A stretch of 64,000 nt of DNA from Trichosphaerium sp. ATCC 40318 (taxonomy: Eukaryota; Protista; Tubulinea). Location of the stretch: the NCBI GenBank assembly GCA_038496445.1, contig JALMLS010000009.1:186001-250000 (forward strand). Reading direction: 5' to 3'. The translations under genes and the position numbers were made by a program. Below the pieces are notes generated by a model. That model searched no databases, was not told where the DNA came from, and was given only the letters and a program-made list of their open reading frames with translations. Below are positions 42,614 to 48,218 of this stretch, in pieces. Within the stretch, counting starts at the first letter, position 1, and each line of letters opens with the position of its first letter.

Positions 42614-45600
42614 TTATCTCCTGTTAAATTTAAACCAATTAATATTAAAACGAGATGAAAGCATTTGCAGTTTCACTTGATGTTTTCCTCCAGATATGTT
42701 TCCGTTAAGGTTAACAGTAGCTGTAGAATATGTATGCCATCCTCCAGTACCTGGGAAGCTTATAGTTCCCTTGTCAACGTTGTCTATTAATATCTTGACG
42801 GAGAATTGTTCTTTCATCAATGAAGCATGTCGAATAGTGAACGAGTAAGATCCTGACTGGAAGTTTACATTGTCATATGCTAAATACTCTCCAACATCAA
42901 TCCAACCAACATTACAACCTCCTCCGTTATCTGTGGTTCTTTGCATATCCACTTGGGCTTTCCCTGCGACAACTTTACCGCCACAAGCTTGGCCTATTAC
43001 AAAGTTAGTAACTTATTTTTTGGAAAAGAGAAAAAGCCAAAGGAAGAAAAGTAAAAAAAGCAGAATATCGGCGTACCTTCATTTTTTGATGTTGTATCAA
43101 AAAAGTCAGTGTATTTCTCGGCTTCAATCCTGTCAGTAGCAGAAAATCCATTGTTGTTGTTGTTGTTATTGTTGTTGTTGTTGTTATTGTTATTGTTATT
43201 GTTGTTGTTGTTGTTGTTATTGTTATTGTTTTGTACTTGCAACTTGGCGAACGGATTTGGGACTGACACTCCGCATTCGCTACAACTGGAAACAAAGTTC
43301 CATACTGGGATTGATTGAGGGTTTGCGTTTCTACTTCTGTCAGCGCAACTAATGCATTTGTCATGGAATATGGCAGGTACGACTAGAGCAGAGGGTTTTG
43401 AAGAGCTAGTGAAACCAGACGGTTGAATCTTTTGAAGGCAAGTTGAAAGGAAGATCGGGTCATGTGGATCTGCTGTTGTCTCGAAAGGACCGAAGGTACT
43501 TGACATTTGACGTGCTTGAACACCATAGCAAATGAGGGCTTTGTCATTATTTCTATGACGGTTCTTGAGGGTGTTACACTCGTTAGGTAAGAGACTGATG
43601 AATCTGTCATATGGTGTGTTAACCTTCGCTGGAGCAATAATGACGCCATCGCAGTTGTTGTTGTTTCTACAAGCATCTACACATGGCTTTGCACCGGCAA
43701 CGTTGTTGTTAGATACCAAGTGACATCCTCCAGTAACGCTTCTACGATCAGGGGCAAAGCAATGATCAACTCTCCTAACAACAAAGTTAGTAAAAAGCAA
43801 GAAGAAAGAAAGAAAAGCAATTACGTACCCGAAAGTGACTTGGTTGCTTTCTTGCTCTTGTGGTGGTTCTGGAACATTATTGCGAGGTTGAGGTACGTTC
43901 ACTGGCTTGACAAATGTCGTTCCTTTGTTTCCGTATATGCTCGCAACTTGTTGGCTTTTGTAGTCAACGTGAACACAATCGTAGTATCCATGCCAATGCC
44001 ATGCAACAATATACCTTCCGAATTTAGATCCTTTAGGTATTGTGAGTTGAGCGACATCGTTATCGAACGGTCTGTGGCTAGTTATACGATACTTGTATAC
44101 AGCGAGCATATCAGGGTATTTACTACTTCTATATGCGCGGTATTTGTTGTCCTTGAGGCTTCTCGTGGTGTATTCATAAAGCTTGTACATTGTTTGTTTT
44201 TGACCTTCGAATTTTATAGGTCTTTTGTTGCTGAATGTATCTCGGAGGTACATTGGATCACCTGGTTTAATCTCTCTCTTGTATCTAGTTCCGAACGCTT
44301 TTCTGTTTAGGATCATACGGAAAAGAGGCGTTCCGTCAACTTCAGAGCCTCCTGGAGCGTTTCTGAGGTAGTCTTCAAATTCGTTCTTTCCGCGACTTGC
44401 AAACTTCCCGAGTGACTCCTCAGCGAGGATAATAAGGTATGAAAAACTATGTTCAGGATGGCCTACTGACCATTCAACTTCGAATTTCTGATCTGGACCG
44501 ACTTGAATGTGTGGTGCATTTCCAGCTTTAGGAGGGCAAGGCTTTTTTGTTGACGATCTGCCTTGGCTAATTGCAGGGGAACCGAGCCAGTTGTGAGCTT
44601 GAACTGTGGTGATAACTGTTGAAAGAGCAATCAAAGCAATTAATGTAATTGCGAGGCTTGGCATAGCTACGGCTCCATTTTTTTTAGTGACAACTAAAGA
44701 AACGAAGAGAACTAAAGCAAGGAGAACGAAACTAATGAGGAATAAGATCGAGAAAAAAAAGAAAGAAAAAAAAAAGAAGAGTGCTAAAAAGGTTTGTACC
44801 TTTGTGATTTAGAAGAAGAACCGCTAGGTAGATCTTGTGCAAGAACTTTCTGGTTTTCAGAGATAACATCGTTTGTAGATAAATCACGTTTTGAACCACC
44901 TGAGCAAGCACAAATACGTTTGATCGCCGAATCACGTGCATTACATTCGACACGTCTATTGCAGTTTGATTGTCTGAAGAAACAGTGCGCTCCTTTTTTA
45001 AAGGTACCAAGTGATGAACAACTTGTAAGAACTAAATCTGCGCATATCAAATCGTTTGCAATGACCATACTAGTCATGCCGTTTTGTGAACTGATATCTT
45101 GGCTCATTCCAGAGTTGCATGTTTTTCCTACGGCTGAGCACGCTTGACTGCATGACTCGCCGACCTTGGACTCATACCAAGTCTTTGGAACACCAGACCC
45201 TTCGTTCAATCTTACGTCACCATTTCGGTTTGGATGATAAAAAGCTCCAGTGTTTGCATCTCCTTGTTTGATGAGAATTCTGAAGAAAATAGGTCCTGTG
45301 CCGGAAGGAGGTGCTTCAAACTTGAAACGTGAAATCAAAGGTTTGATATCTGCAGATGAGTGGGTTACAGAGCGTGAACACTGGTGTCCTGAGTCGCCCC
45401 AAGCTTTCTGGAAGTAAGCTAAACACAAAGTTAGAAAGACTCTGGACACAAGGTTGACTAGCGTTGAACAAAATAGTGCTTACTTGGAACTTGATCGAGA
45501 AGTTTGAACGATCCTACTCGTTTTCCGGTGGAATCTTCGGCGTATAATAGAATACCGCGGTACTAAAAGCGGAGATTAGTTACGACGAAAGTTGTATAGG

Positions 45601-46078
45601 CAGAAAATAAGACAAGTTTTTTGTTCTCTTAGGTACCTTCAAGTTGTAGTCAATAACTTTTACAGTCAAGTCCAAAACGCGACCAGGCTTGTACGTGGAA
45701 GCTGGGTTATTCTCACTTCCAACGTACGCACGAATACCATCGGTTCGCACTGTTTGAGTAGCCCAAGCCATTAGAGCATTCTTGTCACGACAGTCTAGTC
45801 TGTCTTCTTTACCGTTAACTCTGTTGTACTAATAATAACAAACGGTAAACAAAAAAATTGAATAGAGGAATTCAAAGACAGTACCTGTCCTGGAGGACAT
45901 CCGAAGCGCTTATCAAGTGCATTACATACGCTTGGTTTACCGTCAGAAGCGGCAAGTGCGGGGAGCACGAGTGCGAGTGATATTATGCTCAAGAGCACCT
46001 CAACAAACAAGTTAGTGGATTCTAACAAAAAAAAATAGCTTCTAAAACTGCGCGTACAATTTGTGAGTGAACAAGCAT
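42614..46078 (-). CDS. Secreted polyprotein: Reeler - Cys-rich - TM - internal signal peptide - His-brace LPMO-like - PAN-like - polyAsn - CBM6
   Basis: Seven exons join in one frame. Reeler: YKPG..YRGILLYA..VGSF..C..SVTHSS..K..FEAPPSGTGPIFF. VQA|HNW..GHP..YIVAWHWHGYYDC. CBM6: RIEAEKY..VGWIDVGEYLAY..GTGGWHTY..FNINWFKF. Confidence 0.72.
43151..43230 (-). repeat. (AAC/AAT)n coding microsatellite, poly-Asn linker
   Basis: TTG/TTA run on the + strand encodes the long Asn run just before the CBM6. Confidence 0.95.

Positions 46079-47325: not shown

Positions 47326-48218
<893 letters not shown>

Follow-up and report, generated by a model that had tools for sequence, protein, structure and literature searches.

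The 64,000-nt window analysed here (the whole stretch of DNA under study, positions 186,001 to 250,000 of contig JALMLS010000009.1 of Trichosphaerium sp. ATCC 40318) is eukaryotic in character, with approximately 38% G+C and short introns, and carries on its minus strand an open reading frame (ORF), 42997-44664, that a first-pass annotation had treated as a gene in its own right. In the predicted gene model this ORF makes up only the 3' portion of a longer spliced gene, which encodes a secretory precursor of 1001 amino acids (aa). On balance we lean towards the reading that this precursor is cut in two, giving an anchored Reeler protein and a released protein made of an HNW domain, a Cys-rich domain and a CBM6, in which the newly exposed histidine would complete a copper brace and the whole would act on a glycan. 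The parts of this reading differ in strength: homologues and sequence give good support to the gene fusion, while cleavage by signal peptidase and copper binding at a candidate brace are each moderately supported. True catalysis of the lytic polysaccharide monooxygenase (LPMO) type is the weakest link and appears doubtful, since conserved polar residues are missing from this copy and carbohydrate-binding modules (CBMs) are rare in its family.

In translation the ORF contains ...TVQA followed directly by HNWLGSPAISQGRSSTKKPCPPKAG...FEVEWSVGHPEHS...LTIPKGSKFGRYIVAWHWHGYYDCVHVDYKS; a longer reading gives MPSLAITLIALIALSTVITTVQA, then HNWLGSP...FEVEWSVGHPEHS...GRYIVAWHWHGYYDCVHVDYKS, and beyond these the sequence is first Pro-rich, then Cys-rich, and then runs into poly-Asn. 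The motifs on which the first-pass annotation had built its proposal, namely the initial HNW, a second histidine about 45 residues on and YYDC, are all found at the places it gave, the second histidine being that of a GH pair 45 residues after the first and YYDC being part of WHWHGYYDC near the end of the domain. The Pro-rich linker and the long basic insert that it described are also present, the K/R-rich insert being the variable, lower-confidence part of the AlphaFold model (predicted local distance difference test, pLDDT, 57-72 around residues 120-140). Two in-frame-looking introns lie inside the ORF (43828-43775 and 43076-42994, both GTAC...TACTAAC...AG), and a separate minus-strand ORF (42614-42952) encodes CBM6.

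The gene model of eight exons that joins these pieces to the region upstream has seven introns of 54-83 nt, all of which begin GTA (six GTAC, one GTAA) and end AG. The coding sequence of 3006 nt is divisible by three with zero internal stops, and the gene is intact across all eight exons. The junction of exons 5 and 6, where intron 5 joins the Reeler half to the HNW half, is predicted on sequence logic and homologues: three AG acceptors occur in the stretch, just one of them keeps the frame open, and the frame of the HNW exon is open from 44808. Residues 9-391 of the model match end to end a profile (A3) made from the aligned N-terminal regions of 54 fused homologues (306 bits, E 1.5e-95). A word-index search with the whole ORF returned a sole homologue, P0001, which aligns with both the HNW domain and the Cys-rich domain that follows it (BLASTP E 2e-50) and has approximately 290 extra residues upstream of HNW. 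The contig of P0001 (L001) is cDNA-like, being 2886 nt long and intronless, with a single frame of 947 codons that opens with an N-terminal signal peptide and reaches the stop unbroken, and the region of the window just upstream of the flagged ORF encodes the upstream module of L001, split into exons. Flabellula baltica and Cavostelium apophysatum likewise have Trinity transcripts in which a complete ORF contains the fusion. Family members fall into an internal class of 76, in which the HNW domain starts beyond residue 120, and a class of 32-36 in which it stands directly behind an N-terminal signal peptide; a Reeler module lies upstream in 64/76 of the former and in 0/36 of the latter. Since the frame is open upstream and joins five more exons, the status of the first histidine of the domain as "His1" holds only if the chain is cut. 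The precursor extends upstream to a signal peptide of its own, so the "signal peptide" of the first-pass annotation is internal rather than N-terminal, comprising residues 365-387 of the 1001-aa precursor as the second arm of a putative membrane hairpin. A tiny ATG GAG CCG TAG frame (44664-44680, minus strand) lies 10 nt 5' of the ATG at 44664, and would become part of the 5' leader should the downstream half ever be translated on its own.

The residues that precede His1 follow a constant pattern throughout the family. In every one of 119 members a -3/-1 site of the signal-peptidase type stands before His1, after a hydrophobic run; position -1 is A in 89, G in 14, S in 14, P in 1 and T in 1, and position -3 is limited to A, V, T, S, C and G. 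The window protein has V at -3 and A at -1, placing its predicted cut between aa 387 and 388. Further upstream a strongly hydrophobic 12-mer occurs at -60..-26 in 42/77 internal members, and the loop before the second hydrophobic segment holds on average 1.96 K/R versus 0.38 D/E across the family. No Met able to start a separate signal-peptide-bearing protein is present in 30/76 internal members. In the N-terminal class, in-frame stops are found just upstream of the ATG in three independent transcript contigs of P0047 and in the contig of P0021; the possibility that this class is an artefact of shortened ORF calls was rejected on the strength of these transcripts. Read most simply, the internal arrangement would consist of a segment that stops transfer, a loop left in the cytosol and a signal-like segment that re-enters the membrane and is cut by signal peptidase, so that the histidine becomes the N-terminus of the second product.

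Histidine-brace copper proteins include LPMOs, X325/Bim1 and CopC. According to one review, removal of the signal peptide has to come before the brace can bind Cu, and an N-terminal signal peptide is a feature of every known LPMO and of the other histidine-brace classes (PMC10952591). For the precursor described here we propose that the N-terminal signal peptide takes the Reeler-like and Cys-rich modules into the lumen of the endoplasmic reticulum (ER), that the first hydrophobic segment halts transfer, leaving the short basic loop in the cytosol, and that the second hydrophobic segment re-inserts as a signal peptide would, ending V-Q-A right before the invariant histidine. ER signal peptidase would probably cut between A387 and H388, and the products would be a Reeler protein anchored by the hairpin and a soluble protein starting H-N-W. 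The released protein would consist of an LPMO-like beta-sandwich, a conserved Cys-rich domain, a poly-Asn run and CBM6. In it, His1 may hold copper through its free amino group and side chain, together with His46, in a histidine brace with Tyr204 below, and CBM6 may hold the copper centre on a glycan, where oxidative chemistry like that of LPMOs could follow; this last step is the least certain.

A family profile search shows a single copy of the HNW domain within the window. The family is large: when HMMER was run exhaustively with a profile built from two sequences, the representatives recovered, clustered at 50% identity, numbered 542 at E<=1e-3, 330 at <=1e-10 and 96 at <=1e-30. An alignment of 119 full HNW domains (A2) shows H1, H46 and G193 to be invariant, and N2, W3, R9, P19, G45, Y76, D150, Y155, P161, Y195, W201, G203, Y204, D206 and D209 to be conserved in at least 90%; Y204 lies in the W-x-G-Y-Y-D-C motif of the last hairpin. 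Because there are 542 representatives, and H1 and H46 are invariant in 119 of the domains, the HNW motif pattern is not attributable to chance. C20 and C207 covary, both being present in 97 domains, neither in 20 and a single one in 2 (Fisher p 9e-21), and they very probably form a disulfide tying the N-terminal coil to the last strand.

The proposal of the first-pass annotation that this family lies outside the classified ones is borne out, with an invariant first and second histidine and Y or F in the last hairpin: neither Pfam nor NCBIfam holds a family covering the HNW domain of the window protein or of any of the 119 members scanned. A sub-threshold AA9 match, in 4/119 members (best E 0.0054), is the sole recurrent weak Pfam match. 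Sequence searches against PDB chains, with the domain and with the 119-member profile, returned chance matches only (a methyltransferase, E 0.45, and Certhrax, E 0.77). A word-index search with a 235-aa piece gave zero matches, the same type of search with the alignment gave 7, all unnamed, and the viral contigs scanned held no relative of the HNW domain. None of the 20 representatives looked up, nor the 7 from the alignment word search, carries a functional name, the entries being "hypothetical protein", bare transcript identifiers or unnamed. Their sources are JGI, Logan, ENA, MERC and one NCBI entry, mostly as transcript-sized contigs, exceptions being the Trinity transcripts of the amoebozoans F. 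baltica and C. apophysatum and one MMETSP entry; all traceable members come from protist transcriptomes and metagenomes.

With the 119-domain alignment, AlphaFold gave a model of high confidence (pLDDT 89.7, predicted template-modelling score, pTM, 0.89) in which a beta-sandwich carries a helical insertion following residue 58; the model made without an alignment was unusable (pLDDT 41). When compared with 48,161 chains by VIA-align, its first match was LaX325 (6ibh; Z 8.1, 124 aa, 3.2 A) and its second TdAA15A (5msz; Z 7.7, 117 aa, 2.4 A), with AA11 7p3u (6.4), AA9 5acf (6.2), AA10 4oy7 (6.1), AA13 4opb (6.0) and AA16 7ze9 (6.0) lower and more AA10, AA9 and AA11 entries further down; a second look left the ranking unchanged. 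LPMOs made up 15 of the top 50 rows (AA9, AA10, AA11, AA13, AA15, AA16 and X325; Z 5.4-8.1), and every one of the 15 was aligned from its own N-terminal histidine to residue 1 of the model. The immunoglobulin-like (Ig-like) beta-sandwich that the first-pass annotation had expected is therefore what the model predicts, with LPMO-like copper proteins as its nearest neighbours by VIA-align, and the Ig/fibronectin type III (FnIII)-like sandwich can be superposed on solved LPMOs at middling Z, with weak matches in Foldseek. The comparison with LPMO structures that it had suggested gave a divided answer, since VIA-align favoured LPMO-like proteins (LaX325, Z 8.1; AA15, Z 7.7) and Foldseek listed no LPMO below E 0.02. 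In the ESM Atlas the best fold match (TM 0.56) was to a haptophyte cluster with LPMO_10 in 19% of its members, and the leading language-model features were SCE4755-type PMO (0.89), LPMO_10 (0.87) and BIM1-like (0.86). Taken alone, the fold evidence for an LPMO-like identity is suggestive, not decisive. We file the HNW domain as LPMO-like in fold and, more tentatively, in probable mechanism; it is assigned to no existing auxiliary activity (AA) family because no family hidden Markov model (HMM) in Pfam or NCBIfam recognises it.

Table 1. Positions in the 64,000-nt window of the precursor gene and of its predicted parts
Feature	Position	Strand	Basis or remark
Flagged ORF	42997-44664	minus	ORF list
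Whole gene model, 8 exons, 1001 aa (predicted)	42614..46078	minus	splice-site logic and homologues
Exons 1-4	46078-46058, 45998-45885, 45828-45637, 45562-45484	minus	
Exons 5-8	45418-44800, 44731-43829, 43774-43077, 42993-42614 (stop included)	minus	
N-terminal signal peptide (aa 1-24, spans intron 1)	45948..46078	minus	MLVHSQIVLLSIISLALVLPALAA, followed by SDG; aligns with L001 ORF start and the 54-homologue profile
Reeler-like module (aa 65-211, spans introns 3 and 4)	45192..45771	minus	matches the 54-homologue profile
Cys-rich module after Reeler domain (aa 215-310)	44895..45182	minus	cysteines conserved in the 54-homologue alignment
First hydrophobic segment SFVLLALVLFVSLVV (aa 342-356, spans intron 5)	44689..44801	minus	
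Intron 5 (68 nt), joins Reeler half to HNW half	44732..44799	minus	GTAC...TTAG
Short basic loop TKKNGAVAMPS (aa 357-367)	44656..44688	minus	holds the ATG taken as start in the first-pass annotation
Second hydrophobic segment, internal signal-peptide-like sequence LAITLIALIALSTVITTVQA, ends V-Q-A (aa 368-387)	44596..44655	minus	
HNW domain (aa 388-609), LPMO-like beta-sandwich (predicted)	43930..44595	minus	family profile match, 213 bits
His1 codon (domain residue 1, precursor aa 388)	44593..44595	minus	H in 119/119 aligned domains
His46 codon (aa 433), candidate second brace histidine	44458..44460	minus	H in 119/119; end of strand 38-44
Tyr204 codon (aa 591), candidate axial residue	43984..43986	minus	first Tyr of YYDC; Y 113, F 6 of 119
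Pro-rich linker (aa 610-643, spans intron 6 at 43828-43775)	43774..43929	minus	
Conserved Cys-rich "R.DHC ... DPxDPxF.STC ... C..C" domain (aa 644-811)	43270..43773	minus	aligns with P0001 and 109 family tails
Poly-Asn tract, 27 N	43150..43230	minus	AAC/AAT repeats, between Cys-rich domain and CBM6
CBM6 (aa 857-1001, spans intron 7 at 43076-42994)	42617..43134	minus	Pfam

The copy found in the window is not a typical member of its family. It matches 17/21 of the most conserved columns, tied lowest of 119, and is the sole member without R9 (R9 to I) and the sole member without D or E at position 209 (D209 to H); in addition H96 (H in 104/119) is replaced by L and D150 (D in 111/119) by N. It keeps H1, H46, Y204 and the C20-C207 pair. 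The joint replacement suggests that R9, H96, D150 and D209 are one functional cluster that this copy has given up. Its CBM6 is likewise unusual, being present in the window protein only of 110 family tails scanned and absent from the 109 relatives; other tails carry Laminin_G_3 in four cases, Laminin_G_2 in one and F5/8-C-like modules in two. The window gene appears to be a paralogue that has diverged and gained a glycan-binding module, and as such it would be handy for substrate tests and a poor representative of the conserved site of the family.

Several of these results weigh against the full reading of a cut precursor that releases a copper protein acting on a glycan. Because R9, D209, H96 and D150 are replaced, and 17/21 columns are matched, this copy may have changed or lost the ancestral activity. 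A recognisable carbohydrate-binding module is found in 7/110 family tails, none of them CBM6, and with such modules so rare a polysaccharide substrate cannot be extended to the family as a whole. The domain has no HMM-level similarity to any LPMO family in Pfam or NCBIfam, or to any PDB chain, and a VIA-align Z of 6-8 is in the range that the tool calls common for models without a true match. Foldseek gave nothing clear in the PDB, where the best LPMOs were AA9 5ufv (E 0.024) and AA10 3uam (E 0.036) at a TM of about 0.3, GH123 N-domains and p53-like cores came out best, and adhesins were on a par with LPMOs; nor was anything clear in BFVD, where viral LPMOs appeared at E 0.05-0.17. Finally, cutting by signal peptidase within an internal hydrophobic segment of 20 residues is not guaranteed. 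The description of the protein in the first-pass annotation as an unclassified copper-dependent polysaccharide oxidase consequently stands only in part: the uncovered family and the LPMO-like model agree with it, and the loss of four near-invariant residues and the rarity of CBMs speak against it.

The same precursor, cut and brace could instead yield a non-catalytic protein that binds or handles copper like fungal X325/Bim1, with CBM6 tethering it to a wall or matrix. We consider this unlikely, even though the best structural match, LaX325 (Z 8.0-8.1), is a copper-binding LPMO-like protein without LPMO activity, the Atlas feature BIM1-like_dom scores 0.86 and carbohydrate modules are rare in the HNW family. 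The conserved acidic residues D150, D206 and D209 could moreover give a fourth ligand as in X325 (PMC10952591), but D150 and D209 are replaced in the window copy. The gap in Z to AA15 (7.7) is under 1, which VIA-align counts as a tie, no Pfam BIM1-like match was found in the window protein or the 119 members, and the window protein ends in CBM6 with no C-terminal hydrophobic tail or tail of the glycosylphosphatidylinositol (GPI) type. An improbable alternative is an Ig-like module for binding or adhesion that holds no metal and stays uncut, tethered to the hairpin, its histidines being structural or ligand-binding and its LPMO likeness that of a common sandwich. A Z of 6-8 is indeed typical of generic sandwiches, with pilins, adhesins and p53 cores scoring nearly as well, there is no sequence-level link to LPMOs, and the internal hydrophobic segment, at 20 residues, has a length like that of a transmembrane segment. 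Such a module would, however, leave unexplained the histidine at +1 of a -3/-1 site in 119/119 members and the presence of the same histidine right after a true N-terminal signal peptide in other members; the 15 LPMOs among the top 50 rows, all aligned from their own His1, and the language-model neighbours, all of LPMO-type families, also argue against it.

Less probable still is the model implicit in the first-pass annotation, in which a Reeler gene ends at the TAG at 44786-44784 and an independent gene with an N-terminal signal peptide starts from the ATG at 44664. The sequence after this ATG is a good match to a signal peptide and the family does have members with a true N-terminal signal peptide, but the two genes would be spaced by just 119 bp, and the putative intron 44799-44732 shares its GTAC start and its size with the other six and restores the frame exactly, the frame being open from 44808. 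The upstream protein would also be without the membrane anchor that its homologues have, and the fused layout recurs in the cDNA-like contigs of relatives, in Trinity transcripts and in 64 of the 76 internal-class members. The preferred reading, one precursor cut before His1 to release a putative copper protein, leads to a broader proposition that we put forward tentatively and regard as doubtful at present, namely that amoebae and other protists make widespread use of a polyprotein strategy in which one internal signal-peptidase cut yields both an anchored partner and a histidine-brace N-terminus.

The upstream half of the precursor would supply the anchored partner. Pfam Reeler (PF02014) is matched by 20/54 of the homologous N-terminal regions (best E 4.3e-11), and several of these matches exceed the 21-bit gathering score, among them P0061 (41.4 bits) and P0147 (33.2 bits); exon-wise Pfam searches with the upstream exon pieces of the window, and with L001, gave zero direct matches. 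The homologues of the Cys-rich module after the Reeler domain (aa 215-310) include 9/54 that weakly match the C-terminal 90 residues of Pfam Glyco_transf_18 (GnT-V; best E 1.1e-4). One relative of 1677 aa, P0043, carries a plastocyanin/azurin-type cupredoxin (PF00127) at residues 366-441 (32.6 bits versus a cutoff of 21.2). This cupredoxin, which replaces or joins the upstream module, sits just before the hairpin and an "HQW" domain, P0043 being the sole member with Q for N at position 2. A blue-copper electron carrier at or next to the position of the Reeler module hints at a redox partnership.

Downstream of the HNW domain, the DHC motif of the second Cys-rich domain is found in 61/76 internal and 29/36 N-terminal members, and its histidine is nearly invariant. 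This domain is without a Pfam family and may be an obligatory partner of the HNW domain. It had been labelled PAN/apple-like, a label that we treat as tentative: no PAN-clan Pfam match rises above the cutoff (MANEC, E 0.089, 13.5 bits versus a cutoff of 25.5), exon 7 alone gave no Pfam match for the Cys-rich domain, and scores of 0.78-0.81 for Atlas PAN clusters are a weak lead. On the opposite strand the poly-Asn tract reads as poly-Leu in a spurious ORF. The CBM6 downstream of the HNW domain is confirmed above the Pfam gathering score, PF03422 matching the last exon at 76.6 bits versus a cutoff of 28.9 (E 2.6e-21), with CBM_35_2 at E 2.1e-18. It is split by intron 7, the typical start "RIEAEKY" coming from exon 7 and the remainder mostly from the last exon.

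Each feature of the proposed precursor has a counterpart in known systems, and each also departs from it. The alignment of the HNW domain with X325/Bim1 (6ibh, 6ibi) extends from residue 1 of both proteins (Z 8.0-8.1, 123-124 residues, root-mean-square deviation, rmsd, 3.0-3.2), and X325/Bim1 is a compact, extracellular sandwich with an N-terminal histidine, as the HNW domain would be after the cut. X325 is fungal and GPI-anchored, lies behind an N-terminal signal peptide and uses Asp as a fourth ligand (PMC10952591); the HNW domain, in contrast, has no sequence or Pfam similarity to it, contains approximately 70 extra insert residues, is accompanied by a Cys-rich partner domain and CBM6, and sits behind an internal signal-like segment. 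With the AA15 and AA10 LPMOs (TdAA15A, 5msz, Z 7.7, 117 residues, rmsd 2.4; ScLPMO10C, 4oy7, Z 6.1) it aligns from their catalytic His1 and shares an invariant His1, a second invariant histidine where a strand ends and, beside a Cys-x-Asp-Val-like motif, Y/F within the last hairpin. Its C-terminal motif may resemble that of AA10/AA15, a lead already present in the first-pass annotation. Those LPMOs are often fused to CBMs, as the HNW protein is here to CBM6. The HNW domain differs from them in lying below every Pfam threshold, in having its second histidine only 45 residues after His1 and in carrying its helical insert after the second histidine, not before; its HNW start and the near-invariant R9, H96, D150 and D209 may also lack counterparts there. 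It further departs from known LPMOs, whose catalytic domain stands right behind an N-terminal signal peptide (PMC10952591), in being internal.

Reeler domains are found on the extracellular side of CYBDOM redox proteins (human SDR2/FRRS1 and Drosophila CG8399), where their role is unknown (PMC10691727). The precursor resembles these in that its Reeler-like module would face the outside of the membrane and be combined with a putative redox partner (PMC10691727); it differs in having no DOMON or cytochrome b561, the partner being a putative copper domain separated from it by the hairpin. As for the processing, certain viral polyproteins are built alike: transfer is stopped by one segment, a short loop remains in the cytosol, and a further, signal-like segment with a -3/-1 site re-inserts, so that one chain gives two products. 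Signal peptidase processes internal signal sequences in the structural polyproteins of flaviviruses, pestiviruses and hepaciviruses. Unlike these, the HNW precursors form a cellular protist gene family, in which the new N-terminus left by the cut would, in addition, be catalytic or bind metal. In the full-text literature we found no paper joining Reeler with LPMO in this sense, or an internal signal peptide with a histidine brace, and none linking LPMOs with Amoebozoa or describing the HNW family or its design (AA18-20 and protist LPMOs included).

If the preferred reading of a cut precursor is correct, it adds to the LPMO-like proteins a large family, with more than 500 representatives at 50% identity, that current HMM libraries have missed. 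It would also establish a second route to the histidine brace, by an internal signal-peptidase cut in a two-product precursor with a Reeler or cupredoxin partner, and would provide a cellular polyprotein on which processing by signal peptidase could be tested. The hunt for oxidative carbohydrate enzymes in microbial eukaryotes would be widened. On the broader and more doubtful proposition of a polyprotein strategy, the cell would make from one chain, in a 1:1 ratio, a surface-anchored Reeler partner (cupredoxin in one relative) that might donate electrons and, alongside it, a copper oxidase for secretion. The neighbouring ORFs of the window gave no useful context, their sole match being a fragment of an Arf-family small GTPase gene at 47631-48188 on the minus strand, which is intron-split and whose first exon piece matches PF00025 (E 5.3e-13).

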